NCBI GenBank assembly: GCA_964036045.1
Contig: OZ038379.1
Coordinates: forward strand, 15,376,001 to 15,440,000
DNA: 64,000 nucleotides
Reading direction: 5' to 3'
From: Eutreptiella sp. 'Long Island Sound 2002'
Taxonomy: Eukaryota > Protista > Euglenida
Position 1 is the stretch's first letter. Every line of letters begins with the position of its first letter. Below, piece after piece: positions 5,370-62,930 of the stretch. Below the pieces are notes generated by a model. It worked only from the letters and a program-made list of their open reading frames with translations. It had not been told where the DNA came from and searched no databases. The position numbers were made by a program, and so were the translations under genes.

Positions 5370-6991
5370 CTTTCAGAGAAATGTAGAGTACCGGAGAATA
5401 TGCGTGAAAGCCGGTACACCGGCCCCGTGTTATGATTCCCTCAATTACCTCAAAGCATCACACGGTGCTCATTGGGGGAGGGGGAGGGTGTTGGAAACGG
5501 GGCTCGATATATCAGGGCCTGGATGAAAGGGCAGTGTGAAGACTGGCGCGGAGTAGATCTTGTGGACCAAAAATGGCCCCAGTCATCTGCATCTAAAAAC
5601 GACCAGCGCTCCGCATTGCACAGGCATGCGTCAGCGGTACATGGCATGGACCAGATGCTCGTCAGTGGCCCGTCACACTGGGGGGGGCGCAGGGGGGGGG
5701 GGGGGGTCCGAGTGCAGCCCGGGAGAAGTTCTGTGTGTTGTTGGCCAAACAAATGAGAACACACAGGACAACAGAAGAGGGTACAGCAAAGGAACGGACG
5801 GGAAGGCCCTCGGTGTCCTTCACGCCCTCATCGGGCATGTGTTGTTCATCACGGAGCCAGACGACCACGTTGATGGTTCATGAGTCGCTCCTTTCCCGAT
5901 CTGCAGGAGGCGCACGGGGAGGGGTGCGGGTTCATGGGCGCAGGCGGAATGCGTGCCCCACTACTCACGATTGCAGCGTCCTGCCCCCGTGGCGTCCACT
6001 CTGCTGCCGGAGCCGGAAGAGGCTTGCATTGAGTCATTGCCAAACTGTGATGTTTTGGGGGGTGCTCTGATATGCTGCGGTACCATGGACCCTCCCTCCC
6101 CCCCCCTCCCCCTCCTGATGGGCTCTGGATGGTTGCTGACAATTCCTTGTGGTCATACAACAGTCACAGGACACAACGAGCATACGACGGTACACTCCTT
6201 CCGTGGGCCGCACCTGCGACCCAGCGCACACACACGAATTGCAAACAAACAGACGAGCAGCACAACGCCGGGTCCGGATGTCAATTCCTCGTCAGTTGGT
6301 CATCAAACAAGACAAAGCATGTTCAACGCCAGTAGGCGCCTTTCTGCGGGGACAGGCGCGCAGCAGTGATCTTGTCCTTAGAAGGAAGAAGGACGGTGCT
6401 GCCCTATGGCAGTACCGGCCTGAACTCACGACGACATCACCAGGGGATCACCCACCTTTTCGGTTTATCACAGAGCAGGGTCGCACACACACACACACAC
6501 ACTCTCTCTCCCCTCCCCTCATCCCCCCCCCACCCCCAACTGCCCACCCCAACGGCATTCATAACTGATGGTAACTGCTCCAACACCGTTTGCCTGTTTG
6601 CCAACCCCTCCAACAGCCTGACATCCCCGCACTGGTCCCCCCTCCAACGCATTGGGGGTTAAGAGCGTGCACATTCACAGAAGATGAGGGCAATGCGAGG
6701 GCATGGGACCTTGCCCCCATCACTCTCCGGGATGCTGCCTGCCAGCAGCGTGATCTTGTTGTCCATGGCCGCCTTGCGCATGGCCTGGCTGGTCTCGCCG
6801 GACGGGATGTCCTCCGCGTACTCTGGGAAGTACTTGGTCCCGTAGGGTGTCTGGAAACACTCGGGCAGCATCACGAAGTTGGCCCCCTCCTGCGCCGCCT
6901 TCTGGATGTGCTTGACGGCGTTGGCGATGTTGGCGGCTTTGTCGGCCCCGACCTTGAGCTGGAGGAGGGCGACTCGAAGCTTCCCGGCCAT
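4806..6991 (-). CDS. NIT2: Omega-amidase (nitrilase superfamily, Nit2/Nit3 branch); 2 exons, about 281 aa; join(6710..6991, 4806..5369)
   Basis: Exon 1 MAGKLRVALLQLKV...LPECFQTPYGTKYFPEYAE...GSIPESDGGK joins via a GT(6709)...AG(5370) phase-0 intron to exon 2 VFNCSVAWGADGSLLGKYRKMHLF...GICFDLRF...YPGAFNMVTGPPHW...ARAVD...SPARD...YGHS...PWGEV...RRHDLY*. The E-K-C catalytic triad is intact and the motifs match NIT2 as I recall them. An alternative ATG lies at 6994. Confidence 0.95.
6710..6991 (-). CDS. NIT2: NIT2 exon 1
   Basis: 282 nt; contains catalytic Glu (LPEC); donor AAG|GTCCCA at 6709. Confidence 0.93.
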
Positions 6992-8682
6992 CATTGGCAA
7001 AAATACACCCTGAAAGTGAAGGGGGTTTGACCGCAGGGGCGTGTGTAGACCACGCCGAGGAGGGGGATCACAAGATTAGGGAGAGCGCCAGGGGCATTAG
7101 GGTCCTGGGCGTCCTGGAGTTGGTGGGTTAGGGCTGGCTTGGCGCCTGCTCTAGCCCCACCCCCCACCCCCCTGTGCATTGCGACGCGTCAGGGGGACCC
7201 GATCCTCGCGTTCACGTTGGGTCCTCCGAGGCGCGCCCATGCTCCGCCTGCGGGTTTGATGCCCCCGTCTCTGCCCTGGGGGGCGAGGGATCCGCCTCCT
7301 GCTGCGGCCGCACCACGAAGCCCACCATATTGGGGGCATCCCGCAACATGGATGCGTTGCCGTGCAGTCGCCCTTTGCACCAGCGCAGCCGTATCTCAGC
7401 TTCAACAAAAAGCATCCCCGGGTTTTCAGGCGCTTGTCACGAGCACGTCGGTTCTTTTTGGTCAACCCCAGACCTTTGGCGAGCAAAGTCGTCCATTGCT
7501 GCAAAGTCTGAGGCTGGCAGTCGAGGGTCTCACATGCATTTGCACATGAGCGTGCGCTCGATGATGATAAATCGATGTTCATGAAGCGGCTTTGTTTTGC
7601 GGGGGGGGGGGGGGGGCTGTCGGAAAACCCCTCCAAAGCTGAAAGCTGGGATCGAAACAGGGATGGGTGCTCCTGGCTGGGCCCATTTGACTGGAAATCT
7701 GAATGATCTGGCGTGCAAAATGGTCAAAAAGTTTCACTGAATCCCGGACAGATGACTTTTCGAGACCCCGTCGTTGCACTGAGTCCACAGACCTCATTTT
7801 CCTTTTTTTTTTTGGACATTTGGAGTCTGGGTCACCCCCCAAGGCCATGGCGGGGGGGGGCTTTGACAGGTGCAGTGAGGGGAGCCCTTTCGGGGAAGGG
7901 GGCCGGTTCCGGCCACGATGGTCTAAACCCCCCAGCCCCCACACATACAATGAAAAAAAAATTCTGGGGCGTCCAGCAGGTGTACAAGGCGCATTCATTT
8001 TTGGGACCGAGGGCGGCTTCGATCCGGGGGGGGCGGGGGTTGAAGGCGCTGTACGCACTGAATGCGCTGCATTGTCAATGCAACGCAGGCACAAGGCACG
8101 CGGGAGTCAGGGCCAATGGATATCGCTGCGGTGGGCACATATGGTGTGTGGCACATGGCGCGGACTTGTCCCAGTACACTACTGCCGCAACGCCATCGCC
8201 TTTGGGGCTGTTCTGTTCTGAGTTCTCATTCACAAGATGAGCGCTTGCAAATCGGGGCGGGCTGTGCGAACGATCAGGCCATGCGGCAGATCCGGGTCCC
8301 TGCACCTGTGCCTTCCCCTTGTTTGGACCCTCCCGTGACTTGGGGCTGGGTGCCGTCTGAAGACCTTGGCGTCGAGGAAAGCTCGTGGGTAGGGCTATGG
8401 GAACACTACCAGGCCCACTTGCCTGCACTTAATGTTCACTGATGAAGCTTCGATTGGGCGTTGATCAGTGACCACCAAAATGGCAGTCAGGCAAACAACA
8501 GTCCGACAGGGACGGGGTCACCGCAGCAGACAAACAGGTGCTTCGTCAATCAAACAGGTTGTGGGACTGGGTCATCAAAACAGGACCTTGGCTGACTTCA
8601 CAGCGAAAAAAGAGAGAATATTGTCCCACAATACCGACTGCTGCAACACACGCCAGACAGAACATGGTGTAGGGCAGCCCTG

Positions 8683-8772
<90 letters not shown>
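8683..8772. repeat. (CA)n microsatellite, about 45 units
   Basis: Near-perfect CA run with one AA interruption. Confidence 0.98.
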
Positions 8773-8774
<2 letters not shown>

Positions 8775-9366
8775 ACATGCCTTGCACTGTGGGCTAAAAA
8801 AATCAGCAATACAAAGCTCATCACCAGCGATTGGTGCTCTGGGCCCACTGCAACTTGGGTTCACCCAAGTCATCCCTCTCCATCAGCGAGCACCTTGGTG
8901 TGACGTCTCACTGACATCGCCAATTTCTTGGAGGGGTGGGCCGCTGCACCCAGGGTCCAATCGCTCATACAAATTGTGCACTAAAAAACACACCGTAACC
9001 GGTATGCTGCCCCTCACACATGTGTATTAGGGTCCAGACCTTCACATACCGTGGACTTCAGCGGATTGGACCACCACGCACCTCCTTTTGCAGTCATGGG
9101 CGCGGACCCAGAGCACAGTATAAAAGAATACAATCAACTGCATGTGTTGTCCAACATTAAACTAGATTGCTGCCTGCCATGGGCTTCACGGGAATGGCAC
9201 CTCAGCATCTTGTCCAACTAAAAAGTATGTGGATAGGGAACAACACAGCTACCATAACTGGGATGCTACTCCCCCCAGACACACACAAACACTGACGCAT
9301 GTACTTACACAAAAGCAGACATATATACAGTGTGCATAGCTCAGCCAGCGGCAGGTAGCAGCTGGT

Positions 9367-9402
9367 GCCACACACACACACACACACGTTGGGAACCGCG
9401 AG

Positions 9403-9445
<43 letters not shown>

Positions 9446-9457
9446 CACACACACACA
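9367..9457. repeat. Interrupted (CA)n microsatellite
   Basis: Two CA tracts (9367-9387 and 9401-9457). Confidence 0.95.
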
Positions 9458-12400
9458 AGTAATGGACATATTTGTGTTAGAACACTGTTTACAAAATTTT
9501 CTGTGCGCCACCTTTGGCCCCAAATGGAAACGATGGTCCCTGCCAATAGAGCCCGTTTCCCCAACCTCCCGGCTCTATTGACCGCACTCCCCAGCGTCCC
9601 GGATTGAAAATCCACGGCCCTTTGTGATATGGTGCAAAAAAAGTTTTTTGTGGCAGGGGATCAGAATTCGGTTCTGGATCTCGTTCTTGGAATCCCCCTG
9701 CCCGGTGTTGGGGGACAGTGTTGGGGACAGTCACAATGAAAAGGTGCACAGAAACCAGCCACACAAAACATGGCTCATCAACGGTACCATAAGCACCAAA
9801 CAACAGCCCCACACTGCTGTATTTGGATTCATGCAAAGCCATGTCCCTGCGGTCCGTAGTACACCATCACACCATTTCTAAGAGCCAAAGCGGGTGCCTT
9901 CTCTTTATTTAAGCTGAACGCATTGCGCGGGGGGTTGTGCCGTGTCCCCATATGGCCTGCTGGGATGGCCTGCTCTGATCCTCAATGACGGGAATGGCAA
10001 TTTTCTCCCTGCAACTGTGAATTTCACCACCTCTAGTCCTATGAACCTCCGTCCAGCATTAAGCCTGGGTTCTAAGAAGGCTCGGCTCACCCACCGGGTA
10101 CCCTCCCTCCCACCCCATCCAAAGCAGTATCACAAGTGCAAAAGTGCATTGGATCATTCAGCCATGGCTTCTGAACACAGAGGGACACCAATATTCAAAT
10201 GTATGTTCCCCTAACGACTCTTTTGTTGAGCAACGCATGAGCAATACAACTCCTGTTCACACTCTCAAAAGGGGCAAGCTCCCGCATCCAACTCCTCCAC
10301 AGGGTGAACACACCGGCATTCAAGCGCTGTAGCCACAGCGCAGGAAAGGTGTGTAGATCTGTATTGTTGCCCCCTGTGCCATGACCACCTGCGCTGTGTG
10401 CATTTGTGTGTGCGTGTGGGTGGGTGTGGGGGTGGGTGGGTGCATGTGCGTGTGCACGCGTGCATGCGCTGGGCGTACTTGTGTGTGTGTCTGTGCGCGC
10501 GTGCTCTACTTTGTCAACAAGGCACATGTGGGTGTACATTGGAGGCATAGGAGGAGCACTCGGTCCGCAGGTGTGGATAGAGCATCAAAGAGGGTGCATG
10601 GCCCCAGCATGCCCCATTATGGTCCGTCCCCTTGTGGGATCCATGCTGCAGTGGAGGAGAGGAGCCGGGCTAAGCCCTGGCACCCCTACCATCTGCCTCT
10701 ACTCCTCCCGGCCGCTGTACAAAGAGGTAGCCTACCACACGAGGAATTGAGCACCAGATGTACACGGTGGCAGAAATGAAATACGGCAGCAGAGGATGCG
10801 GCGTGCCACTTCTGCCTGCCCCTTGAGTTGTCTCCACGTGAACTTTAAAAAGTGTGACGGTAACGCAAATGATCTCAGTTGAGCGGGGGTGTTGGTCCCC
10901 AAGCATGGATTGATTGGACTGGCTGGGCGCAAAAACTGACGGCCGCCGAAACAACATTAGCAGCGTCACCAACAACACTCATGTGCGCGGCAACACCAGC
11001 ACCACCACCACCACATGCACGGAATGCTTCCACTACTATCACAGCCACTGTAACAATGACCCAACGACATCCATTTCAAAGCAAGTTCTGAACACAATCC
11101 GATCACAGCAGGAATGACCTAATCGCATCCCACGGGAGCCTCCCCACAAACGATCCATGGGTGCCCTGCTCCACGGAGTTGGAGCAACACACCATCTCTG
11201 GTACATGTGTAACCCACCGCAAGAACCAATTACCCTCGTGCCAGATGGCTTGTACAACCCACTTGTTGGTAGAGGTCGGTGGTGGGAGACCGTGTGTGGT
11301 TCTGAGGGAGTGTGTGGTGACGGGCCTCAAAAGGTCAGGGGTGGGCTCCCCACTGAGCTCTAGCCGCGCCTTCACACGGCCTTCATGGCCCACCCAGCTC
11401 GCACAGGACCACCTTGTTCCATGCGCTTTGCTGGCTCATCCCCTAGTCCTCCCTGGCTGGAAGTAGGGCATTGCCATGGGCGGTTCCCGTGATCTCTCCT
11501 GCTTCAGCACTGGCTGGTCAGGGAACGTCCTCTCTTGTTTGTGCATGCCCCATGTCAGACCCCGGAAATGCAACAGCGCGGGTCTGAATGAAGTGAGACT
11601 CTGTGGAGGGAGCGAGCACTGACTGAGTGGGGAAACACCCCCTAGACCACCGATCCCCGTGAGAATCTGCGCCTTGTCTTCTGCTTCCCCTCGAGGCCTT
11701 ATATGCTCATGTGATCATACACTCACGCCCAGCAACACGAAACATGCACCACAGCGCTGGTGATGCATAACAGGGGACATCATAAGATTCCCAACCCAAC
11801 AAGTGATAGCGCAGAGTGCACGGGTGCCGAACAAGCAGATGCATGGCCGCGGGTGGGGCCCAAGGCCTTTGCTTTTGTTGTTGCTGTTGCGGGTGTTGCT
11901 ATTGCTGTTATTGACGTTGGTACCGAGGAGGAGATGCGTGGAAGAAAGCACTGGGGGAAGAAAGATGGGGACAGCACAACAGAAACAGCAGCAGCAGCAC
12001 GATCACTGTCACTGTGACCATCACTGTCACTACCACTGCCACTCAGTACTGCACTTCTACTCTGCTTCTCTAGCCCTGTAGCACTCCTCTATAATGTCCC
12101 TCGTCGGGAGCCCTCAATCTATGTTGCCATCCCTGTCCTTGCACTGAGTGACACCGCCCCCTCAAAACGTTTTCCCACCGCTCCCGTTAGTTGGACTCAA
12201 AGCAGGGTGCACACCGCAGCTAAGAGTTGCTTCAGAGGGTTAGCAGACCACTGCAGACCTTCACATACCTGCGGTTGCGCGCCGTTTTCAGGGCCGTTGG
12301 TGAAGCTACACATGCTCCACAGTACACCATCGGCGCGACGCAGCCGGGCACACGACACCCGCAGTAGAGCAATTAGGCACACAAACAAAGTGGAAAGGCC

Positions 12401-15400
12401 CAGCACCAGGCCCTTGCGGGGTGCTGCTAGGGATTGGCTCACAGGACTGCTGCTGGTGCTCGGACCGTTGGCTTTCACTCTCAGTCCTATTGCGTTGCTC
12501 CCTGCGCGTGGAGCGGCCCAGGCAGCGTGTACAGTGGTGGGGGCATCATGAGGCTTGACAGTCGGGCGGCTCAAGTGTCTGCGGATGTGGTCAAGGCCTT
12601 CACGGGGGCTGCGAGTTCCGACGTGGAGCAGAAGCACGTCTGAGCCCCAAAATCCGCTGCCCGCAGAGGCAAGACGTAGCACTGCCGTGCCAAGCACCAG
12701 GAGTACTGATGCCAACACAACAAGGATGCGCTGAGCACTGCGGCCTGTGTGCGGTACCTCGTGCTGAACGGGCAGCCACACCACGAAAGCTCGATCGTGG
12801 TCCGGGGTAGCGCTGGGGCAACCAGACATTCGCATCGTGTTAGTGCAATAGGTGCATGTCTGCAATAAGCGGCAGTGATATCATACATTAAACGTGGCAC
12901 AGCAACGGAAGCAATGCCCTGGAGCCAGGAAGCAGTATGGCAGGTTTTTGGACAATGGGCCAGCCCGGCACCCCAGCGCAAAGCATCAAAACCCCACACA
13001 TCGACCCCTCGTCGAATGGTAACGCACCCGGCCGCGGAATTTTTAGGGGGACGTCAGCCCCTGAACAAGTTGATGCGGTTAAGAACATTAAAAAAAGCAT
13101 CAAAACCCCGGCAGGTCATATCCCGTTCCGGAACAAGCATTCTTGAATCGGCTCGTCCACCAGGGAATCCCTCGAAGTGGGGTCGCATTGGCCGATGGTA
13201 CGGTGCCCTCAAGTGCGGGTGAAAGGAGTGCGCTGCCACCCCGCAGTCGCCCTGCACCTCAGTGCGCAGCATAGAGGTGGCTTTGTCTAAACCACTGGAA
13301 AATCACATTGAGCCCATTTACCACGATATCTCGAGCCTATTCCTCGCTCCTTCGCCAACTATCAAGATGAAGACCACTGCATGGCCTGTGCAAGCGAAGA
13401 GCCCTCTGAACAGGAGTTCACCCAAAACATTTGACCAACAACATGTCATGGTTGCGGAGGCCTATTGTCCCACAGTTTTGTAAGCAGGGGGACGCTCCAC
13501 AGTCAAATTACACCATACACAGCTATATTGCAGATGGCTGTGCACCACATGGAGCGGTACATTGTATACTGAATGCTGATGGGCTAATCCAACGTCTGAG
13601 TGTTGCACAATTTTTTTTGTGCAAAAAATTTCACTCCAAAACGCACAACTGCCTAAACCCTCTGGGTGTTATACATATGGTGGCCCAGCCTCCAAAGTGT
13701 ATTCCATGATGTGCACATCCCTAGAAAGTGTGGCCTCCCATCAATGAGATGCCTTGGGCCCTCATTTGACAACTAAGGAAGAGGAATGATGCGAGGACTC
13801 AGACCCTACACCCAGGTTAGTTTCCTGCAGATGCAGGGTGTATGCTCTTGTTGCTTTGACCAGACAAATGTCAAGTTGTTTGGTGTTCATCTTGACCACC
13901 CAAGAAATTGGCCGTTTGAAAAATGATGAATAAAAGTAAAACCAAAATGGAGGTGCATGCTGTTGATTGCACCAATTTCTGTCCCATAAAAATCAAATTT
14001 GTAGCTGTCCAAAACACAAGCAATGAATGCCTGAAGAAATTGCAGGAATACGCATGCATTATTGTGTTTCTCTCATCTTCATCACGCATCCAAACCCTGA
14101 TTACAGGGACCTATGACAGTTTTGCATCTATGCCAGATTGCATACGGGGACAGTCAGCACCCACATTTATGGCGTCAGAAGCATCCAAATCCAAAGTGTG
14201 GTTTGGGTCAGAGAGAATTTCTACACATGCGCCCCTCAGGCACCGTCCTGAAGCTTGTGCGACACCCTTTTCCTGAAGCGGTTGCCTCTCTACCCATCCC
14301 TTTTCCCTTGTGCACGCCGCATATTGGCGAAGTTGCGTAGCCTCCAAGTGTGTAGGGCAATCAAAGCCAAAGGCAATCATTGACATAGACCATTGCGGAC
14401 TGTGCCAGACTGCCAGCAATGCATGTCACTTGGCCCCTCCAACACACCCTTAACACGTCAACTTTTTCCGCTCAGTACCCACATGCATATAGTCACATCC
14501 TCTCCTTCCACTTTGAATGATGAGGGCTGGATGACTCAATTTTTTTTCAATGAAGGAGCACCCTGATGCCCCAGCACAAATGAAGTGGTGAGCGACATAT
14601 CATTTCCATAGTACATTTTTGCTTTCAACGTTTTTGTGTGGAGAATACTACGGCATCACTATGCCAATTTGGCTTCCAAAAGAGCATTCTGAAGTCCGAG
14701 AGTCACTTTTAGTATTGATGGTTGCCTGTTGCCTTAAAGGCCTTACTTAGTGACGCTGTTATTTGCCTCAAATTCCTGTTGCTCTGGAAAGCATGATGCG
14801 TGGAACATCGTTGCAATTACTTCAGCTTTTCGCCTTTGTTGTGATACTACTGGTAAAGTCTGGCTATCAATGGGTTGAAAGAAAGGAAAATCGAATTGCG
14901 CACTCTAGTTCTGACCATTGTTTTCAAGTATGAGTGAGAATTTTTGGTGCATGCGTCTTCATGTGATGGCCCTGCATAGCCATGAATGCAATGCAAAGGT
15001 GAAGCTCCTCTTTTTCGAGCAAAATATATGAAATCACATGCTCCTGCACTTACATCTTGGGTCATGACGTGCCTTGGTCAGCTTAATCTATAAACATAGA
15101 TCTATGATGTACAAGGTTGTATTCTGAATTGCAGGCTGCAAAATGCTACAGCCTCCTCGGGTAGGACACAGAGTAAGCCAACGGACCGTGGCCGGACGCC
15201 CCCTCGGACCACATGGCGCTAGGCTACATAACTCAGGGTCTCCAAAGTGGAGAGCAATGATGGGGCTGTGGGCAGCCACAGACAAAAATAATCCTTCGAG
15301 GGTCTTCGGCGCCTGTGGGCAAGTCAACCGCCTGAGCCCAGTACCTGGGGGGCCTGCAACCAACCGTGGCTGCAGGCCCCCCTGAGGGGGTAGCGGTCTG

Positions 15401-53412: not shown

Positions 53413-54347
53413 GGCCGGGTACAAGCAGAGAATAAGTCATGGTGGGCAATAGAGGTCCTGTAGTTGAGGGACACCATTCCCTCACAACCTGCTTTACAAA
53501 TTTGCTCACCCTTACTTCAAGATACATCACAACAGCCCCTCATTTCCCCAAACCTTTCACCTAAAACCGCGGTTCTAGAGCCCGGTACCTAATTACGTAC
53601 CTATGAATTAGATCCTCAAAAATACGGTCCGAACGGAAGTGTTCATTGGACACAGTGTTCGTTGGACACGGGAGGGGGCGGGGGGTACAACAATGCAACA
53701 AGGAACTTCGGGGACAGATTTTTTTGCGGTGGGTCAACTACATTATTTGGCACAACCAGTCTAAATTTGTTAAGCGGGAAAGAAACCAAAGTGGCTACAT
53801 AACGTTTGTGAAATGTCTGAACAGGCATTGACAAAATTTTTCAGCCCCATCGAAAAAAACAGGGCAGTTTGACCAAACTATACCCCGCATTGAGAATTCG
53901 AACGCCCCCCCCCCCCTAGCCCCTGACCAACCTTCATCCTTTGAGCACTCGGTTGTATATGTAGCTTGGACAAGGGGTGCTCTGGAGATCCAGTGCAGAG
54001 TGTGCAGTGCAGGTGCCTCCTTCTGCCCTGCAAGTGCTTGTCTCTGACGTCTTCATCAAAAAGCCCCAAACACAGAGATTGCAGTGCACGTGCTTCTTTC
54101 AGCCCCCAAACAATCTAGTCCACTTGTGGTGCCCAAACGGATGAATACAGCTCATTTTGAGCCCCTTTTGAGCCGCCCTCATCCACTTTCCTGTGTACCT
54201 CATTTGTGGTTGAAGTCTCCTAGACGATGTTCCCTCCCCCACCAGCTTGGTCCCAATATCCAATCCTGGTTAGGGTTAGGGTCACCGAGCTGGTGGAACC
54301 AGTCTTGGTTTTATAACCCTCTTTAGTGTCTAGGGTGGACCTACCAG
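53413..54347. repeat. 935-bp direct repeat, copy 1 (left flank of the YR element; target unit)
   Basis: Matches 60817-61732 except an 18-nt indel, one C in a homopolymer and the three substitutions I could see. Contains GGTTAGGGTTAGGG at about 54269-54282. Confidence 0.95.
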
Positions 54348-54388
54348 TTTGCACAAGCAGAGCACAAGAAAACTGCACAGGACTTGGG
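54348..54388. repeat. Split direct repeat B2 (3' terminal, 41 bp)
   Basis: TTTGCACAAGCAGAGCACAAGAAAACTGCACAGGACTTGGG, identical to 54693-54733. Confidence 0.95.
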
Positions 54389-54626
54389 ATGGCAGTACTG
54401 AAGTATCACCAAGGCCGGAATTCCGGCGGTTGTATGGACGGGTGCGCTGCGGACCACTCCGCTGGATGCGGGACCCCACTCTGATACGGACCCTGACCCT
54501 ATACCCTGGTCCACACGCTGCAGCACGGTTAGATCCCCCACTCTACCCGAGGGAATCGGTTTCAAAAGGGACAGGAAAGGGCAGGTGCTCTCAGGGGGTC
54601 AGCCGGTCAGTGGGTGGGTGGGCGGG

Positions 54627-54733
54627 CAAAGACAGGAAAACTGCCTAAACATTGGAGACGCAAACAAAAGTTGAGACGAGGCACAACTAGTGTTTGCACA
54701 AGCAGAGCACAAGAAAACTGCACAGGACTTGGG
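54627..54733. repeat. Internal B1-A2 junction (copy of the predicted circle junction)
   Basis: The 66-bp A copy (54627-54692) directly abuts the 41-bp B copy (54693-54733): ...ACTAGTG|TTTGCAC... Confidence 0.92.
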
Positions 54734-54984
54734 TATTCATTCTCCGCTGTACCCAGATCCCACACCACAGGTCCCACATCCGGTCCAAGCCCCAGAGGAA
54801 TGTGAACTGAGGTAGTATTCAAGCAAAAGGCAAAGCAACAGAAGCAACCCCCCCCCCCCCCTCGACAACCAGGGGACCCGCCACCGTGCACTGCTGACCC
54901 GCATCTTCCCGAGACACGGCGCCGCGCTCAATGGCAGAGGCCAGAGGCTGAAGTGGAGGGAGGTCAGGAATCGTGTCTTGCACC

Positions 54985-55700
54985 GGGCCCAAATCAGCAA
55001 CGCCACCCCCGGCGGACCCCTCCAGCGGCCGCGCCGCCCGGACAGTCACCACAGTGGACAGACACAGGTGGTCACGACGGTCATCGTGCCCCACGAACAG
55101 ATAAGGCGGGTAAATCGCACCAACCGGCCGTCAGCCCCAGCCGGACGCGGAGTGAGGTCGGCCCAAAAAGGTATCCGCCATATCCTGGTATCCACCACAG
55201 GGTCCACAACCTAAGCCCGGCGGTCTCCTCCAGCGGCCACGCCGCCCCGGACAGCCACCACAGCGGACAGATACAGGCGATCACGACGGTCGCCTTGCCC
55301 TGCGGACAAAGAGGCGGTCTAATCGCACCAACCGGCCGTCAGCCCCAGCCGGATGCGGAGTGATGCTGGCCCAAAAAGGTGAATAAATAAACACCCAGCG
55401 GCCGTGCAGCCAACCATGTAAAAAGATAACACAACAGGCGCACCCAGCGGCCACGCCGCCGGAGTCAACCTCTGCAGAGGGCAGATACAGTCGAGCACGA
55501 CTGTCGCTGAATCTCACAAACGGTAAAAGGCGGCCAGTCCTCGCACCCGGCCTTCAGCTCCAGCGGAATGCGGACCGACGCGGCCCAAAAATACAAACCC
55601 AAAGTAGCACCCAGCGGCCAAGCCGTCAGGGACACCCACTGCATCGGGCAGGCACAGACGACGACGACAGTCGTCAGACCTCACGGGTTGAAGAGGCGGG
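54985..55700. repeat. About 3.5 diverged tandem units of 170-210 bp in the 3' region of the YR element
   Basis: Recurrent blocks CCAGCGGCCACGCC (about 55020, 55230, 55444, 55612) and CGGCCGTCAGCCCCAGCCGGA...GGCCCAAAAA (about 55124, 55334, 55550). Confidence 0.85.
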
Positions 55701-56190
55701 CAATTCGCAACACCAGCCCATACCGGGCCTGGATCCATATATAGGGTACAGCAACCCTGCGTCCCTGGTTCCAGTCCGTTAGGGAGGCCACCGCGACTCC
55801 CCCCGGCAGCCTTACCTCCCAGACCTGGCAGCAGGCATGCCGCCCTGGGGGCTTGACGCTGCGGCCGCCGGGGGTCGTGCGGCGGTGCGGCGTGCCTCCC
55901 GCGCGCGCGGCCACGTCCCGGACCGCCCGTTCCAAAAATCCCTCCCTGTCGTCAGGGAGGGGGCACTAGGGGCACAGGCGCACCCCGTTGCCGAGCAGCA
56001 CCCGGCGGACGGGCAGGCGCGCCAACCTGCCGCGAAGGCGGGTGCGGAGCACGCTGCTCCACCTCGCCGCCCGGCGCTGCTGGGCGTCCGCGGAACGCTG
56101 GTGCCGTTGTCCGCCATGGCGACCCTTTCGGTGGGCTCCACGGGAACCCCGTCGCTTGTGGGCGCCACGCGAGCCCCGACGCTTGGTCAT
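55681..56190 (-). CDS. Putative accessory ORF4 of the YR element: Arg-rich basic N-terminus, interrupted by one TAG (55966-55968)
   Basis: MTKRRGSRGAHKRRGSRGAHRKGRH...RLCP*CPLPDDREGFLERAV...LFNP*. The duplicated 9-codon repeat differs only at synonymous sites. Confidence 0.55.
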
Positions 56191-56284
56191 AGGTGCGGAC
56201 AGCAAAAGAAAAAGGTTGCTACATGGAGGGCGCATGCTCTGCCGCCGCTGCTCTGCTGGGGGGGGGGGGGGTGGGGGGGGGGGG

Positions 56285-57700
56285 CTAGCATCCCCGGAGA
56301 CACACCACCCCCCTCACCCTAGCCTCGCCCAGATTCTCCAGCAATGCATCCCACGTGCACCAAGCCTGGACTTCCGCTCTGGCCTGCGAGCCTCCGAACA
56401 CTGACGTCACCCTGGACATAGGGTCTCCCGGCTGAAGCGCCGAGGGCACCCACACGAGGCGGAGCACGATCCCCGATACCCACAGGATTCTAGCCAATGA
56501 CCGAAGGACCGTTTGGTGGTGGGTCAGGTGGCTAGTCGCGCGCAGCCTTAGGACCTGAGCAATGGCTGCCTCACTGTCGCTACAGACCGTAACAGATCGG
56601 TGTCCCGTCCTGACTGCAAACCTGACAGCCCACGCCACTCCCCTCAGTTCCGTGGTTTGCTGGCTGGCGAAGCGGGCAGGAGGTGTCACATGCGTACGCA
56701 CACCCACTCCCGGCACGAGCGCCCGAACCCTCCAGCACCCCGCATCGCGCGCTCCATCGACACAGATGACGACGCCCCCGCACCACAGAGATGATCGCGA
56801 AAGCCTATCCTCAGTCCCAAACTTGAGGGTCCTCAATTGCCGCCAGGCCTCCCCGCCCGGCGCCTGCCAGGGCTCGGCCGCCAACGCCACCAATGTTGCG
56901 AGGCTGCCCAGCATTTTCAGGGGGAAGCCCTGGGCCGGCTGTTTGACCCCCCCCACCGTCCTACCCCAGCGCAACCAGCAGTAGGCTCCCGCCGCGAAAG
57001 GGCAACCCAATCCCCTCGGACGCACATGCCAATTCAGCAAACCCAGGAAGCTTTGGAGGTGCCGGTCGTTGCCTGCGCCAACCGCCAGCCTCAGCCATCC
57101 CGCCCACAACTGGAGCAGTGCTTGTTCATGGCTCCTGATCCGCCTGGCCTGCAAGTCGAGCTCCTTCCCCAGGAATGACGCCACAGGCACGGGGTCCAGG
57201 ACACTCTTAGGACTTATGAGGAAACCAGCCTCGATCAGGGCACGCACTGCCACTCGCCCCGCCTCCCTGAGCACCTCCCTATCAGTGAAGACGAGCAAAA
57301 AGTCATCGAGGTAGTGCACAAGGAGTATCTCGGGGGGCAGTACCCCCTGGAGAATGCGCGCCAAACTCGTTTGGCACAGATAGGGGCTGTATTTCCAGCC
57401 AAACGGTAGGCGCGACAGCGCCACAGGCGGAGCCCCGGGGGCGGGCCGGAAGCGAAAAACCCGGCGCGCACCCTGGGGCAAGCAAAAGCTCCAGAACGCA
57501 TTTTTGAGGTCAATGTGGAGGCCGTAGAGGTCCACATCAGGCGGGAATGCCGACAAGGACCTAGCCAAATCCTCCCGGGAATCCAATCTAAAAGTGGGGG
57601 GCTTGCCCCCGTCACTCTTGTTGATCTTGACGCAACTCAATATCAAGGAGACCTTCTCGGATGATTTGGGGATGACGAAGGGGTAACACGTGGGCGGGGG
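56285..57700 (-). CDS. Reverse transcriptase plus RNase H (DIRS-type) of the YR element
   Basis: PTCYPFVIPKSSEKVSLIL...PPTFRLD, HIDLKNAFWSF, RLPFGWKYSP, VHYLDDFLLV. RNase H: VDGARD, QTTELRG, CSDSEAA, WVPSALQPGDPMSR. The frame begins at the C13 run (57696-57708). No DAM methylase domain is visible. Confidence 0.93.
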   Translation of the reverse strand, partial: PPPTCYPFVIPKSSEKVSLILSCVKINKSDGGKPPTFRLDSREDLARSLSAFPPDVDLYGLHIDLKNAFWSFCLPQGARRVFRFRPAPGAPPVALSRLPFGWKYSPYLCQTSLARILQGVLPPEILLVHYLDDFLLVFTDREVLREAGRVAVRALIEAGFLISPKSVLDPVPVASFLGKELDLQARRIRSHEQALLQLWAGWLRLAVGAGNDRHLQSFLGLLNWHVRPRGLGCPFAAGAYCWLRWGRTVGGVKQPAQGFPLKMLGSLATLVALAAEPWQAPGGEAWRQLRTLKFGTEDRLSRSSLWCGGVVICVDGARDAGCWRVRALVPGVGVRTHVTPPARFASQQTTELRGVAWAVRFAVRTGHRSVTVCSDSEAAIAQVLRLRATSHLTHHQTVLRSLARILWVSGIVLRLVWVPSALQPGDPMSRVTSVFGGSQARAEVQAWCTWDALLENLGEARVRGVVCLRGC

Positions 57701-59951
57701 GGGGGGGGTCAGCCGGCTCCTCGTAGACCCCCGCCCCCCTCAACGCCTGCACTATCCTCTGGACCTGCTGCGACACCCATCTGGTTGCCCCTCGGACCAC
57801 CCTATCCCCGTCCTGCCACTCTTGCTCGACGTCAAAATCCTGGAGCCCTCCGTGGTAGAAGGGCGGTACGACAGCGTCCCACAGATCGTCCGGTAGCTGG
57901 TGGGAGCCTACCGGTCCCAATCCCCAGTCCAAAATGGCATCCTCGACCCCCCCCATGAACCGCGGAATGGGGGAGGTGTTGATATGGAGGCATGCCTCCC
58001 AGGCGTCCGGGTGGAGCTTGCGCAAGGCGCCCAGGAGAGCGGGCAAAGCCCCTTGCAAGCGGAAATCCTCGGCTGTATCGAATACTCTATTCAACCACAA
58101 ATCCACCCTCTTCGCAACCATCCACAAGCCACAACGTTCCCGCTCGGCTATCCAGTGAAAATGGGGGGTGATCGCCTGCATGAACTCCAGGAAGAGGGGG
58201 GGCTGTTCCTGCACCCTCCCACCCCTGTCGGGACCCTTACAGCGGGGGGGGGGCGACGCCACTGGGCCCGCCCTCCCCCAAGCCTTGGCCTTGAGACGCT
58301 CAGCTGCAGCCACGAAGGCACCCTCCACCGGGCCTTGCGCCTCCGGCGTCCGGACACGCCCGCCCTGCCCGAGCTTGATGCGCTTGGGCTGCGGCGTTCC
58401 GATCTGCTGGGCCAAACGAGGTCTCCCAGCTTGACGGCGTGCGGGGGCTCGGGATCGCACGGCCTGCGCACCATCCAGGACCACCTTAGCGCGACGCGGC
58501 CCCGCGTATGTGCGGTAGACACGGCCCACCACTCCAGCTTTCGAGCCCGCTGCGGGCCCTCCTCTGACTGGGCCAACGGCTGCCCTGGAGGACCACGGCT
58601 TACGCTCTCGTCCAACGAACCTGGCAATTCCGGCCTGTCGACGCCCGGGGGAGCCCCTGGCGCTGCCGACTGCGAATTCGCCAGAGGGCTCGCTTCCGGA
58701 ATCCTCGCTGTTGTCGTCGGTGTCCACGTCGGAATCGACCTTGATGGGTCCGGCTGCCGTCCCCGGCCCGCACGCCCCCCCCCCCACGGCCACCAAAGGC
58801 CCCGCCACCGTGCACAGCTGACCCGCATCTTCCCGAGACACGGCGCCGCGCTCAATGGCAGAGGCCAAAGGAGGAAGTGGAGGGGGGGTAGGAGCTGTGT
58901 CAGGCCCCAGGCCCACCTCAGCAGAGCCGTCCCCCGGGGATTCCTCCAGCTCGGCCGCGGTTTGGTCTCCGTCGCCTCCTCCCCCAAGCGTGCCGCTCGC
59001 AGCGGATTCCAGCTTCTGACCTCGCGGAAGTCTCGGCTTGCGCCTGGTCGGGGTGTTGAGGGCGCTCGCGATACTGGGGAACATCGGGGATCCCCACAGG
59101 GCCAGGACGCCCACGCGTTCCGGAGTCGGCAAAGGCCCCTGGTCACGGGACCATGCGGGCAGCACCGTAGGGGCAACGACTCCCGGGTCTGACCATTTGG
59201 TGCCGTATTGCATCGCCACGGCCGTGCTTTGCCATCTGCCCCACCATTTGTAGTAGGCGAGGTCCGGCTTACGGGCCCAAGTCGCTGCGGCGCCTCCCCT
59301 GCGCAGGGCGTGCCACCTGGCCCGGAAGTGGGCGGTGCTCGCCAGGGCGTCGGCCATGCCCGCCTCCAACCCCGCTTCCCCTGACTGCCAGACGAGCATG
59401 TCTGAGGACCGGCCCAGCAAAACCATGTGGCCATGAAGCCACGCCCGGACACTGTCCGCATACCTGTACAGGGGGCGGGTGGTGTACCCCTCCTCCACTG
59501 TCTTGGAGTTCCAAAACTGGACAAAGCCTGGCATAGCCAGGTCAGTAACCCTGATGCCAGCTGCTTCGCCCACCCGCAGGTAGCATACCCAGCTGATGAT
59601 GGCCAATGCGCTGAACACTGCTCCGTGTCTGGAGTCTCTGGCCTTTTCGACCAGCTGGACCAAGCCTGCTGGGGACAGATAGGGCTGAGAGCCCGAGGAT
59701 GCGGCTCCCGCCGCGATCCGCTTGTGCAAGGTGGTGACTGTTGGGGGCAGCCACTGGAGGTCCTCCACGGCTCTGACCGCGGAGGTAATACCCCGCAGGG
59801 CTGACGCTGTAGCGCCGGCTTGCGCCCGCTCCGCCAGGAGGCCTGCCAGTGCTGCGGCTGTATCAGGCGGGCCCGTGCGGTCCGCGTAAGCCGCCAAGGC
59901 CCGGAGTCGGGACGCGTACTGCGAGCGGGTTCTCGGTCTCCAGGACTGCAT
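57612..59951 (-). CDS. Tyrosine recombinase plus long linker and RT N-terminal region
   Basis: The catalytic R-K-H-R-W-Y set is intact: LRVGE, NSKT, WHALRRGG, WGRW, MQY. The frame is open upstream to the gag stop. The C-terminal WVSQQVQRIVQALRGAGVYEE resembles the start of a DIRS RT. Confidence 0.93.
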   Translation of the reverse strand: MQSWRPRTRSQYASRLRALAAYADRTGPPDTAAALAGLLAERAQAGATASALRGITSAVRAVEDLQWLPPTVTTLHKRIAAGAASSGSQPYLSPAGLVQLVEKARDSRHGAVFSALAIISWVCYLRVGEAAGIRVTDLAMPGFVQFWNSKTVEEGYTTRPLYRYADSVRAWLHGHMVLLGRSSDMLVWQSGEAGLEAGMADALASTAHFRARWHALRRGGAAATWARKPDLAYYKWWGRWQSTAVAMQYGTKWSDPGVVAPTVLPAWSRDQGPLPTPERVGVLALWGSPMFPSIASALNTPTRRKPRLPRGQKLESAASGTLGGGGDGDQTAAELEESPGDGSAEVGLGPDTAPTPPPLPPLASAIERGAVSREDAGQLCTVAGPLVAVGGGACGPGTAAGPIKVDSDVDTDDNSEDSGSEPSGEFAVGSARGSPGRRQAGIARFVGRERKPWSSRAAVGPVRGGPAAGSKAGVVGRVYRTYAGPRRAKVVLDGAQAVRSRAPARRQAGRPRLAQQIGTPQPKRIKLGQGGRVRTPEAQGPVEGAFVAAAERLKAKAWGRAGPVASPPPRCKGPDRGGRVQEQPPLFLEFMQAITPHFHWIAERERCGLWMVAKRVDLWLNRVFDTAEDFRLQGALPALLGALRKLHPDAWEACLHINTSPIPRFMGGVEDAILDWGLGPVGSHQLPDDLWDAVVPPFYHGGLQDFDVEQEWQDGDRVVRGATRWVSQQVQRIVQALRGAGVYEEPADPPPPAHVLPLRHPQIIREGLLDIELRQDQQE

Positions 59952-60086
59952 GGCACTTTCCTCCGGTGAGCAGGGGTCGTCTGACCGAGCTGCTGTCTCC
60001 CACCGGCGGGCGACCGCCCGCAGCTCTGCCGCCGTGTCCGCAACGCCGGAGCCCGGGGCGGCCAGTCCGGGCTCCAGTCGGCCCTG

Positions 60087-60719
60087 TCAGGACCAGTGTG
60101 GGCATCTAAAGTGCCAGTGGCGTTCGTCGGGGGAGCCCCGCTGCGCGCACCTCTGGCACCCCCCGCTCGGCGGCGAGTCCACAGGGATCCACTCGCCCTG
60201 CCTCGACTGCCATTGCAGTACTCCTCCCACCTCCCTGAATTTCACGCTCCGCCACGTGAACGCCGATCCTTGTTCCTTCCATGCCTCCTCCAGCGTGGTG
60301 TACTGGTTGGACTCGGAGCTGGTTTTTCCGTGCGTCCCTGCATACCTTCGGGCATATGCCGCCTGGGACTGGGACACGCAGTCCCAGACCCTCCACGCCA
60401 GCTGCTCTCCTGGGTCGACTGCGGCCTCCGTCGCCTGGCCGCCAAACCCACTTGGTCGGGGGATCTCCCCCACCTCACCAGCTCTAAGGCGCACGTACGC
60501 CTTGATGTTGGACAGCATGAGTCTCATCCACTGTGCCAACTGGGGCTTCTCGAGGGCTCGGTTTACTTCTGGTACGCTCAGTGGGGGCAGGCGGGGCCCC
60601 TCCTTCACTGCCACTCGGGCGAGTTGCTCTCTGAGTTCTTGAATTTCTTTGGCTTGCGCCGCCAGCCGCTCCTCGGCTGACTCGTGCTGGTTCTGGCTAG
60701 GCTGCTCAACCCCGTCCAT
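60087..60719 (-). CDS. gag-like ORF (coiled-coil N-terminus, C-terminal C-X2-C-X9-H-X4-C finger), 210 aa
   Basis: EERLAAQAKEIQELREQLARV is coiled-coil-like, and CQRCAQRGSPDERHWHFRC is the finger. It is the first ORF after repeat A1. Confidence 0.8.
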   Translation of the reverse strand: MDGVEQPSQNQHESAEERLAAQAKEIQELREQLARVAVKEGPRLPPLSVPEVNRALEKPQLAQWMRLMLSNIKAYVRLRAGEVGEIPRPSGFGGQATEAAVDPGEQLAWRVWDCVSQSQAAYARRYAGTHGKTSSESNQYTTLEEAWKEQGSAFTWRSVKFREVGGVLQWQSRQGEWIPVDSPPSGGCQRCAQRGSPDERHWHFRCPHWS

Positions 60720-60732
60720 GGGTTAACAAAAA

Positions 60733-60798
60733 CAAAGACAGGAAAACTGCCTAAACATTGGAGACGCAAACAAAAGTTGAGACGAGGCACAACTAGTG
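60733..60798. repeat. Split direct repeat A1 (5' terminal, 66 bp)
   Basis: CAAAGACAGG...GCACAACTAGTG, identical to 54627-54692. Confidence 0.95.
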
Positions 60799-60816
60799 GT
60801 TTAGGAGCAGCAAGCA

Positions 60817-61751
60817 GGCCGGGTACAAGCAGAGAATAAGTCATGGTGGGCAATAGAGGTCCTGTAGTTGAGGGACACCATTCCCTCACAACCTGCTTTA
60901 CAAATTTGCTCACCCTTACTTCAAGATACATCACAACAGCCCCTCATTTCCCCAAACCTTTCACCTAAAACCGCGGTTCTAGAGCCCGGTACCTAATTAC
61001 GTACCTATGAATTAGATCCTCAAAAATACGGTCCGAACGGAAGTGTTCATTGGACACAGTGTTCGTTGGACACGGGAGGGGGCGGGGGGTACAACAATGC
61101 AACAAGGAACTTCGGGGACAGATTTTTTTGCGGTGGGTCAACTACATTATTTGGCACAACCAGTCTAAATTTGTTAAGCGGGAAAGAAACCAAAGTGGCT
61201 ACATAACGTTTGTGAAATGTCTGAACAGGCATTGACAAAATTTTTCAGCCCCATCGAAAAAAACAGGGCAGTTTGACCAAACTATACCCCGCATTGAGAA
61301 TTCGAACGCCCCCCCCCCCTAGCCCCTGACCAACCTTCATCCTTTGAGCACTCGGTTGTATATGTAGCTTGGACAAGGGGTGCTCTGGAGATCCAGTGCA
61401 GAGTGTGCAGTGCAGGTGCCTCCTTCTGCCCTGCAAGTGCTTGTCTCTGACGTCTTCATCAAAAAGCCCCACACGTGCTTCTTTCAGCCCCCAAACAATC
61501 TAGTCCACTTGTGGTGCCCAAACGGATGAATACAGCTCATTTTGAGCCCCTTTTGAGCCGCCCTCATCCACTTTCCTGTGTACCTCATTTGTGGTTGCAG
61601 TCTCCTAGACGATGTTCCCTCCCGCACCAGCTTGGTCCCAATATCCAATCCTGGTTAGGGTTAGGGTCACCGAGCTGGCGGAACCAGTCTTGGTTTTATA
61701 ACCCTCTTTAGTGTCTAGGGTGGACCTACCAGGTTTAGGAGCAGCAAGCAG
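60817..61751. repeat. Direct repeat copy 2, including the empty integration site
   Basis: 60817-61732 matches 53413-54347 and continues into GTTTAGGAGCAGCAAGCAG (61733-61751), which also occurs at 60799-60817. Confidence 0.95.
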
Positions 61752-61790
61752 CAAGCAGCAAGCAGCAAGCAAGCAAGCAAGCAGCAGCAC
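61741..61790. repeat. (GCAA/GCAGCAA)n microsatellite
   Basis: gcagcaagcagcaagcagcaagcagcaagcaagcaagcaagcagcagc. Confidence 0.9.
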
Positions 61791-62813
61791 GCGCGAAATG
61801 GCTAAAAAGCAGAACTCCGTCGTGGTGCTTCAGATTCGGGTGAAATTTTGGTGGATGCTACCTATGGGTGTGAAGTACAATCACACAAAGTTTTAGCAAG
61901 AAACTCAACGGTGGCGGCCGGGAACGGCATTCACAAGTGGCGGACCTCAGTTTCAAAAACTGCAGTTTAGGGCCAAAAACAGCCATTTTTGGGCCAAAAA
62001 AGCCCTGGAACACATTCAAAACGGCCAAACGAAGGGAAACGGTGGGTACCCTCCACGTGCGGCTTGACTTCTCCGTGTCAACGAGCTCTTTGCGGCCCTC
62101 TAACTCCGTGATAACTCCAAGAAACGGTCCAAAAAGGCCCCCAAAAGCTCCAAATGCCGACAACCACAAACCAAGAATAGGCCATATCTTTGGCTACATG
62201 GCTCAAAATGTGATTCCGAGGGCACCTACACCACCCGCAACCCCCACTTTTTGTGGTTTCCACCCCTCAGAATTGCCCAAACGGACGCCTAGACCCCAAT
62301 ACCTAGGCCCAGCGGGCCGCGGCAAGCTGCAAGCTCAAGCCCAAACAGGTGGGTGCCCAAATGGGTCAACAGGGTCCAATACGGGCAAAAAGATGACTTT
62401 TCTCAAAAATGATCCTAGACCATGCGCGACGCTAAAACAAGTGTTTTTGGACTGTTTTGAGCTTGTGGTGGCCCATTTTGGTCCTCCGAAAATCCCCAAA
62501 TGTCTTGAAAATGGGCTGTTTTGGGACCAAAAATGGGTCAAAAATGGGTCAAAAACGCATTTTTCCAAACCTCATCCTAAACCATTTGGGGTGCACAAAC
62601 GGGTGAAGTGAGCCCATTTTGAGCCCATTTCGGGGTATTTTGGCCCCTCAGAAGTCCAAAAAGCCTTGAAAGTGGGCCTGGTGGTGATGGGGTTCACTTG
62701 CAAGCTGATTTCACTTTGTCAAGAGCCATCAATGTGTGAATCATTCTTGATGTCCCTCACGAGTCATAGCTGATGTCCCTCTCCCACCAGCTCGGTCCCA
62801 ATATTCAGTCTTG

Positions 62814-62930
62814 ATTAGGGTTAGGGCTACGGGTAGGCTTAGGTCTTGGGGTAGGGTTAGGCGTAGGTGTAGGGTTAGTACTAGGCTGAGGGTTGGGGTG
62901 GGTGTTAGGGTCAGGGTTGGGTTTAAGGAT
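62814..62930 (+). repeat. Degenerate interstitial telomere-like (TTAGGG) hexamer array
   Basis: TTAGGGTTAGGG followed by about 17 variant hexamers (ggtagg, cttagg, cgtagg, tgtagg, gtcagg and others). Confidence 0.8.

Follow-up and report, generated by a model that had tools for sequence, protein, structure and literature searches.

A tyrosine-recombinase retrotransposon of Eutreptiella beside its own uninterrupted target, and the long flank duplications that recur at its copies

How does an inserted element come to stand next to an intact copy of the site that it has entered? The question is raised by a stretch of 64,000 nucleotides from the euglenid Eutreptiella sp. 'Long Island Sound 2002' (contig OZ038379.1, positions 15,376,001 to 15,440,000 of the forward strand; assembly GCA_964036045.1), referred to throughout as the window. 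It carries a 6,451-bp insert (54348-60798, minus strand), a retrotransposon encoding a tyrosine recombinase (YR) with split direct repeats arranged as A1...B1A2-spacer-B2, and beyond it the uninterrupted version of the sequence found at the two element boundaries. Hereby, the element itself is a YR retrotransposon of VIPER-like architecture, and the unexpected part is the recurrence of long flank duplications beside its copies. The empty site lies beside the filled one because about 954 bp of target sequence have been duplicated, and this side-by-side placement most probably came about through the insertion itself rather than by two sites lying there beforehand by chance. Element coordinates are given such that E1 corresponds to window position 60798 and E6451 to 54348.

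The preliminary description of this locus had read the arrangement as the substrates and products of one reciprocal crossover around a single G. Exact 14-mer checks in the window confirm all four sequences, namely the left joint CTACCAG/TTTGCAC (54341-54354), the right joint ACTAGTG/GTTTAGG (60792-60805), the empty site CTACCAG/GTTTAGG (61726-61739) and an internal copy of the circle junction, ACTAGTG/TTTGCAC (54686-54699). Compared to the uninterrupted sequence, not a single base is gained or lost at either joint. The in-register identity between junction and target consists of one G at the crossover plus TT at +2/+3, the shared crossover base being C on the element strand and G on the plus strand. 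A 4-bp core common to junction and target (GTTT/AAAC) was considered and rejected, as it lies one base out of register with the observed products. The element end at 54348-54388 is identical to 54693-54733 in 41/41 positions and the end at 60733-60798 to 54627-54692 in 66/66, so that B1A2 (54627-54733) equals B2 plus A1 over 107/107 positions. Judged by this identity, the element stores in B1A2 a copy of the joint that would form when its two ends meet; the junction 14-mer is kept inside nine copies at eight loci. The right flank (60799-60817) matches 61733-61751 in 19/19 positions, and this 19-mer occurs twice in the window, with zero occurrences expected by chance. The same structure is present in the ENA contig ctg10230_36x_l of assembly ERZ25074135, which is the same assembly and thus no independent check. 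Between window positions 50088 and 64000 and the ENA contig L002 we observed a single 1-bp gap across 13.9 kb, so that the window may derive from a slightly different version of this assembly.

What separates the filled from the empty site is a young direct repeat. R1, next to the element 3' end, and R2 show 97.6% identity over 935 bp and differ by three substitutions (54213/61598, 54239/61624 and 54294/61679, all no more than 135 bp from the joint), one 18-bp indel (54069-54086) and one 1-bp indel (53905), the first ~800 bp being otherwise identical. Including the 19 bp of the right flank, R + 19 bp (~954 bp) is tandemly duplicated, and the element sits 19 bp inside the second copy. The breakpoint j1/R2 is found at the far end of j1, 19 bp from the element 5' end, and shows 1-nt microhomology. 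Both j1 and j2 carry a derived GGAG which the host repeat holding the target does not show in its other copies, so that the duplication is recent. Accordingly, the insertion, previously called conservative, free of a target-site duplication (TSD) and without any base gained or lost, deserves this wording at its two joints, but not at the locus as a whole, which holds a young duplication of ~954 bp.

To place these observations in a wider context, the window was compared with 11 further loci (L001, L003-L012) of assembly ERZ25074135, in which the element family is abundant, its protein clusters counting hundreds of members. The loci were chosen via recombinase or reverse transcriptase (RT) open reading frames (ORFs) at least 90% identical to those of the window, with exact-protein look-ups returning one genomic place per query, and hence form a non-random sample. 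All 11 loci show the same termini. CACTAGT stands as an intact 5' end in the window copy and in L003, L004 and L007-L012, with a fragment of it in L001, and GTGCAAA as an intact 3' end in the window copy and in L001 and L005-L012; altogether, 20 of 24 ends are cut at exactly identical nucleotides. Copies with different ends, or with the 935-bp repeat included, had been named beforehand as what would overturn the preliminary description. Instead, the ends are the same and R is missing at 11/11 other loci, so that R is not an LTR-like terminus (LTR, long terminal repeat) and the corresponding outer layout R1-E-j1-R2-j2 was rejected. Six full-length copies (L007-L012) possess both ends intact and no flank duplication at all.

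The base directly past the 3' end GTGCAAA is a C in 11/11 ends, and the stored junction reads GTGCAAA-C-ACTAGT, with one C common to both ends. Among the known uninterrupted targets, this C is present in the window, at W/X of L005 and at X/Y of L001; at the L006 joint the target does not contain the C and two extra bases are found instead. The 5' flanks of the copies (AAAC, AAAC, AAAA, AGTT, GAAT, CATA, GCAG, TTGT and GTAC) are unrelated, so that CTACCAG^GTTTAGG is not a target motif; nor is it a preferred target, as the other sampled copies of the host repeat in which it lies are unoccupied. Across the 12 copies, target flanks share the C alone, with weak A-richness at -2 and -3, which rules out any fixed motif. 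In L009, target and B end agree at 9 of 14 positions. The former proposal of an overlap shorter than the few-bp core of DIRS elements is supported insofar as the constant shared base is a single C/G at 11/11 3' ends; the overlap length itself cannot be measured from a single product, because a staggered mismatched exchange looks like a one-point crossover once replicated. The low target identity thus reflects either a very short overlap or a staggered overlap that tolerates heterology.

Duplications are not restricted to the window. At six of the 12 loci, window included, a locus-specific direct duplication X abuts the element as X-E-X (Table 1); among 5000 random segments matched in size, 32 (0.64%) had an abutting duplication. 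Each X is confined to its own locus, and the possibility that X represents an element variant or a periodic host satellite was dismissed on this ground. Members of X pairs differ by 0-2%, and A1/A2 and B1/B2 by 0-4.5% (window: 0 differences in 107 bp), the duplicates hence being as young as the insertions. In each duplication locus one joint is proper, i.e. an intact end at the target C, and the other, improper one shows microhomology of 1-3 nt, the shared bases being CA, CA, CAG, GTG, G and C; in L001 the 5' end is joined at a GTG that includes the C/G. The window represents a special case, in which both joints are proper. For the family, the six full-length copies without flank duplication are consistent with the conservative and TSD-free mode assumed so far, but 6/12 copies carry an abutting one. 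A limited literature search yielded no account of YR retrotransposons with long flank duplications. An older repeat of 78% identity near L003 does not abut the element.

All truncated copies (three with one truncated end) and both rearranged ones belong to the duplication class. The two 5'-truncated copies, which are independent of each other, L005 (9203-9206) and L006 (11655-11664), begin at the same position, E50-53, equivalent to window ~60746-60749, and end at a B repeat with A2, spacer and B2 missing. This suggests that they represent RNA-length cDNA which was not restored, and places a putative transcript start near E50 (window ~60746-60749). As for the rearranged copies, L001 (2787-15600) consists of two nearly full copies head to head in a near-perfect palindrome with its junction at 9180, and 16 nt from the 5' end stand inverted at its outer edge; the L006 element (5792-11664) shows internal inversions.

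Table 1. Features of the element, its target and the flank duplications. Positions refer to the window; X, flank duplication at the locus named.
Feature	Position	Strand	Remarks
R1, duplicated target adjoining the element 3' end (TTTGCAC side)	53413-54347	.	935 bp
B2, 3' terminal split direct repeat	54348-54388	-	41 nt; ends ...GTGCAAA on the element strand; identical to B1
Unique spacer between A2 and B2	54389-54626	-	238 bp
A2, internal copy of the 5' terminal repeat	54627-54692	-	66 nt; 66/66 to A1
B1, internal copy of the 3' terminal repeat	54693-54733	-	41 nt; ends GTGCAAA
Non-coding 3' region with tandem repeats	55008-55700	-	~208-bp repeats, about 3; whole non-coding part about 1.5 kb
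ORF3, reverse transcriptase, weaker RNase H match	56285-57646	-	453 aa
ORF2, N-terminal 280 aa (59112-59951) predicted tyrosine recombinase	57612-59951	-	779 aa
ORF1, gag-like by position	60087-60719	-	210 aa; coiled-coil N-terminus
A1, 5' terminal split direct repeat	60733-60798	-	66 nt; E1-66; starts CACTAGT
j1, target sequence joined to the element 5' end	60799-60817	.	19 bp; GTTTAGGAGCAGCAAGCAG
R2, second copy of the duplicated target	60817-61732	.	97.6% to R1
Uninterrupted site CTACCAG/GTTTAGG with j2, followed by (CAAGCAG)n microsatellite	61726-61751	.	
Dispersed host repeat ('T-unit') containing the target	61653-62830	+	bounded by degenerate TTAGGG-like tracts
X, L003			~50 bp; 1 substitution; 3' end truncated near E6385
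X, L004			54 bp; 0 substitutions; 3' end truncated near E5640
X, L005			262 bp; identical; 5' end at E50-53; A2-spacer-B2 missing
X, L001			611 bp; 5 substitutions; outer ends intact on both sides; head-to-head rearrangement inside
X, L006			816 bp; 6 substitutions; 5' end at E50-53; A2-spacer-B2 missing; internal inversions
X, window			935 bp; 3 substitutions; both ends intact

The enzyme that would perform such joining is encoded in ORF2. Single-sequence Pfam and PDB searches with this region gave no match, and neither did a profile of 10 sequences. An exhaustive profile search returned 755 homologues, and the recombinase assignment rests on an alignment of 30 sequences built from this search. 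Hereby, R126, K150 and Y249 are invariant and H214, R218 and W240 nearly so; the 30-sequence profile matches Cre at 6e-6 and XerD at 6e-5, and 8 of the 30 homologues match Pfam Phage_integrase. An AlphaFold (AF2) model of the region reaches a predicted local distance difference test (pLDDT) score of 92.9 (38 only for an earlier model) and in Foldseek superposes on Cre with a template modelling (TM) score of 0.71-0.74; matches of the predicted fold to Tn1549 Int and IntI are weaker than that to Cre. By alignment and predicted fold, residues 1-280 of ORF2 are thus assigned as a tyrosine recombinase. Together with the B1A2 identity, this bears out the initial identification of a YR element with an internal copy of its circle junction. 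ORF3 encodes an RT of the retroviral/LTR type and matches Pfam RVT_1 (E 5.9e-13), its best PDB matches being the MMLV, XMRV and HIV reverse transcriptases (best E 2.8e-07), while the RNase H match to RVT_3 is sub-threshold only (E 0.0054, 17.1 bits vs a cut-off of 21.6). Pfam scans of the element proteins detected neither a DDE integrase nor an endonuclease domain. Between 56285 and 54734, where the tandem repeats sit, there is no ORF or Pfam match, which, since the DIRS methyltransferase domain is divergent, is weak evidence for the absence of such a domain.

How, then, did the duplications arise? On balance, we favor the explanation that a single precise joint of the recombinase type is made and that the second joint is sometimes finished by repair synthesis of the host. 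That the duplication was made during insertion, with one end joined precisely and the other completed by host repair in about half of the events, is a view we hold with moderate confidence. The recombinase would hereby cut the B/A junction and join it to almost any target containing a C, with a required identity of ~1 nt. The restored 5' end at E1 cannot stem from copying of A2, because synthesis would run into B1; the restored end therefore argues for site-specific cleavage of the B/A junction, which we attribute to the recombinase. With low confidence, a concrete scheme can be outlined. The element would be attached in one strand at the site, and synthesis would start from a 3'-OH located at the joint or slightly upstream of it (19 nt in the window) and proceed along the uninterrupted strand. 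In the window, this synthesis would copy j and then R, displacing j-E-R; the displaced 5' end would then be sealed to the newly made one, giving msat-j2-R2-j1-E-R1 on the element strand. Should the free 5' end be that of the element itself, intact or unrestored, the scheme would yield X-E-X. R2 would be the copy made anew. Comparison with other host-repeat copies allows two of the substitutions to be polarised, and R2 has the derived base at both; these bases, as well as the clustering of substitutions near the joint, would fit the scheme, which is suggestive but weak.

Several points weigh against this explanation. It is drawn from 12 copies forming a non-random sample, whose structure was read from the contigs of one long-read assembly, and the six clean copies were judged without empty-site alleles, so that target deletions may be hidden there. 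L003 and L004, with intact 5' and truncated 3' ends, require a mirror image of the scheme, and unequal joining of sisters or homologues, or widely staggered nicks, would give the same product. Finally, the breakpoint in the window lies 19 bp off the element, unlike that of the other five loci, where it is found at the element end; this offset keeps a pre-existing tandem duplication in play for the window locus alone. The preliminary description amounts to such a duplication of host DNA, [R+j][R+j], with two identical target sites, one of which a circular cDNA entered conservatively; the neighboring empty site would then be an independent paralogue that was there before. Although both joints are exactly conservative relative to the neighboring site, the element sits 19 bp inside the second unit and off the breakpoint, the region is full of this host-repeat family and six other copies are clean and free of duplications, we consider a pre-existing duplication unlikely. 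Five other loci possess abutting locus-specific duplications, for each of which the chance is ~0.6%; R1 and R2, with 3 substitutions in 916 bp, are no older than the insertion (0/107 bp in the terminal repeats); and the derived GGAG in both j1 and j2 marks a recent event. An even less probable course of events is a clean insertion, U1-R-E-j-U2, followed, later or within one cell cycle, by unequal joining of filled and empty chromatids or homologues through non-homologous or microhomology end joining, or alternatively by recombinase exchange between the element end and a pseudo-site on the sister, with U1-R-E-j19/R-j-U2 as product. Two breaks on two molecules would be required at each of the six loci, the constant presence of truncated and rearranged copies in the duplication class would be left unexplained, and the version relying on the recombinase alone yields neither the 19-bp offset nor truncated ends. 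Such joining would nevertheless be in line with the 1-nt microhomology at j1/R2, with the R1/R2 differences of three substitutions and two indels, which could be allelic, and with L001, where both ends are intact and the 5' end is found at a GTG microhomology including the C/G; in Chlamydomonas, Crypton recombinase activity has moreover been tied to rearrangements between element ends and distant targets (PMC9977147).

Another conceivable origin of the duplication class is linear or incomplete cDNA, or RNA, that entered via host break repair or LINE-type machinery acting in trans (LINE, long interspersed nuclear element). L005 and L006 are of RNA length, with 5' ends at E50-53, intact 3' ends and duplications of 262 and 816 bp, and LINE-type RTs exist in the genome (L006). 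Dualen LINEs leave duplications with a median of 900 bp (PMC9977147), and DIRS-1 cDNA is mostly linear and single-stranded (PMC7192593). We nonetheless give this origin little credence: the precise restored ends of the window and of L001 need the B/A junction to be opened at one exact nucleotide, the intact 5' and truncated 3' ends of L003 and L004 are the reverse of what target-primed reverse transcription leaves, and neither a poly(A) nor another tail is present. An assembly artefact, in which a heterozygous insertion was mis-linearised and its flank counted twice, is hardly credible. The contigs do come from a single long-read assembly with 27-50x coverage and the slight differences between R1 and R2 look allele-like, but the breakpoints at j1/R2 and at the truncated ends, with their 1-3 nt of microhomology, offer no overlap to an assembler, and the pattern occurs on six contigs with differing lengths and ages.

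Going beyond the single locus, we tentatively propose, as a possibility that is itself still rather doubtful, that integration of YR retrotransposons is not a purely conservative entry of a circle into the chromosome, but comprises one precise joint and, in about half of the cases, completion by repair which duplicates 50-950 bp. If this held, a filled site would end up beside an 'empty' one that had just been copied, and copies that are truncated, inverted or of RNA length would arise as well. For the DIRS order, a one-ended or single-strand step of integration would thereby have its first evidence at the footprint level, and a long-untested integration model would become directly testable in a family that apparently is still active. 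Both footprints are found among young copies of one genome: a clean 1-nt overlap on the one hand and long duplications, microhomology and RNA-length truncations on the other. The family thereby makes it possible to measure how specific the recombinase is, what kind of molecule integrates and how much host repair contributes to completing the insertion. The locus also serves as a warning, as an insertion itself can create the arrangement of a filled site beside an empty one, and half of these copies would receive wrong boundaries under annotation rules which assume that duplications are absent.

According to the accepted picture of DIRS integration, which was derived from sequence anatomy, a double-stranded circle is inserted by the recombinase at 3 bp of identity and without duplication. 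To our knowledge, entry of a DIRS-order element into the genome has never been directly shown. In the DIRS1-like model the 3-bp junction is identical to the target and no TSD is formed (PMC3266345). DIRS1-like elements and the PAT-like Pat1, Toc and kangaroo resemble the present family in that an internal sequence reproduces the joined termini and in the very short identity between junction and target (PMC3266345). Unlike the direct repeats and the 1 nt found here, however, DIRS1-like elements have terminal repeats that are inverted, plus internal complementary regions (ICRs) and a 3-bp junction, and PAT and DIRS1 encode a methyltransferase-like domain, which Pfam did not detect here. As to the intermediate, DIRS-1 cDNA was reported to be mostly linear and single-stranded (PMC7192593). 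VIPER and TATE, YR retrotransposons of kinetoplastids, contain three ORFs listed as gag-like, YR and RT/RNase H (RH) and no methyltransferase, and of their split direct repeats A1 is placed 5' and B1-A2-B2 3' (PMC6681497). The present element shares with them the ORF order, the A1...B1-A2-B2 arrangement and the lack of a detected methyltransferase, a likeness by architecture alone. It differs by its short repeats of 66 and 41 nt, compared to 136-381 bp (A) and 219-294 bp (B) in the trypanosomatid elements, and by the 238-bp unique spacer between A2 and B2. TATE, moreover, is reported from within telomeric hexamers at GGG^TTA, whereas this family has no fixed target.

The gene order of Ngaro elements, as described by Poulter and Goodwin, is reportedly gag, RT/RH, YR, and thus unlike the order found here, where the YR (59951-59112) is placed upstream of the RT (57646-56285). 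In other respects Ngaro elements are similar, being YR retrotransposons of about 6 kb without methyltransferase and with an A1-[ORFs]-B1A2B2 arrangement (PMC8547959, PMC4157794). As a further difference, the internal repeats of Ngaro lie downstream of the YR (PMC4157794). Cryptons likewise employ a eukaryotic YR which joins a short terminal motif to a near-identical target, their short 'direct repeats' representing target microhomology and not true TSDs, and their recombinase activity has been linked to nearby rearrangements (PMC9977147, PMC13465315). Compared to the present family, they lack a reverse transcriptase and split repeats and share a motif of 4-6 bp instead of 1 nt. Duplications longer than 50 bp (median 900 bp) accompany over half of the insertions of the Dualen LINE of Chlamydomonas, and, as here, such long flank duplications are found with the duplicate on either side of the insert (PMC9977147). 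Dualen, however, is a non-LTR element with two endonucleases that uses target-primed reverse transcription, in contrast to the YR and the duplication-free half of the copies observed here. Circular intermediates which recombine with many targets of little or no overlap identity are known for the heterology-tolerant bacterial tyrosine recombinases Tn916/Tn1549 Int, IntDOT and the integron IntI. Unlike the present family, those belong to DNA elements with coupling or overlap regions of 6-7 bp. Recombinases of the Cre/lambda type require 6-8 bp of identical overlap and inverted binding arms, as opposed to the 1 nt plus TT at +2/+3 found here.

Along the element, A1 is followed by the gag-like, YR and RT/RNase H ORFs, the 3' untranslated region (UTR), B1, A2, the spacer and B2. 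ORF1 matched no Pfam family; a 210-aa ORF1 is also present in L001, L003-L005, L007, L008 and L010. In the window copy, ORF2 and ORF3 overlap by 35 nt (57612-57646) in different frames, and its ORF2 of 779 aa is the longest among the copies seen. In L004 (11740-13665) the RT frame stays open for 641 aa farther upstream. The arrangement of the two ORFs reflects either a frameshift that is used or an indel in one of the copies. Part of the 3' UTR (54851-55033) is an 83% copy of the element's own ORF2 DNA (58775-58959, 185 bp). Shorter variants of the family (L007, L009-L011) lack part of the tandem-repeat 3' region, and L003 contains in its 3' repeat region an extra B-like repeat with three mismatches (14792-14832), located upstream of the regular B1A2. 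The inverted pairs detected in the window include no inverted terminal repeat, the termini being direct split repeats; no further copy of the YR element was found in the window, and an Rfam scan of it gave no match.

The target itself belongs to a dispersed host repeat at least about 1.2 kb long, which may be a transposable element or a former subtelomeric unit. Since L005 and L007 are alike also upstream of the telomere-like tract, the full unit extends beyond the part delimited in Table 1. Degenerate TTAGGG-like tracts are found at 54269-54281, 61654-61666 and 62810-62930, the (CAAGCAG)n microsatellite at 61740-61790, and further copies of the repeat in L002 (4515-5671, past the window end), L007 (7903-8654) and L005 (1326-2353). 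Three uninterrupted copies elsewhere read CTACTAG/GTTTAGC, CTACCAG/GTTTAGC and CTACCAG/ATTTAGC and thus independently validate the 'empty' sequence as native. The last ~80 bp of R1 are part of this host repeat, while the first ~240 bp of R (53413-53650) correspond to another dispersed repeat, also present in L008 (5996-6234) and L011 (7536-7700); R is therefore a mosaic of host repeats.

Two further YR families were encountered beside the copies analyzed here. In L009, a third family begins at 17003 with CACTAGTTGAGCC and is 67% identical over the first 700 bp. L010 (1822-7366) contains a second family, whose A repeat measures 82 nt and whose 3' end holds a 386-bp A-B unit in 2.3 tandem copies; its junction overlap is 2 nt (AA), so that very short overlaps apparently are usual in this genome.

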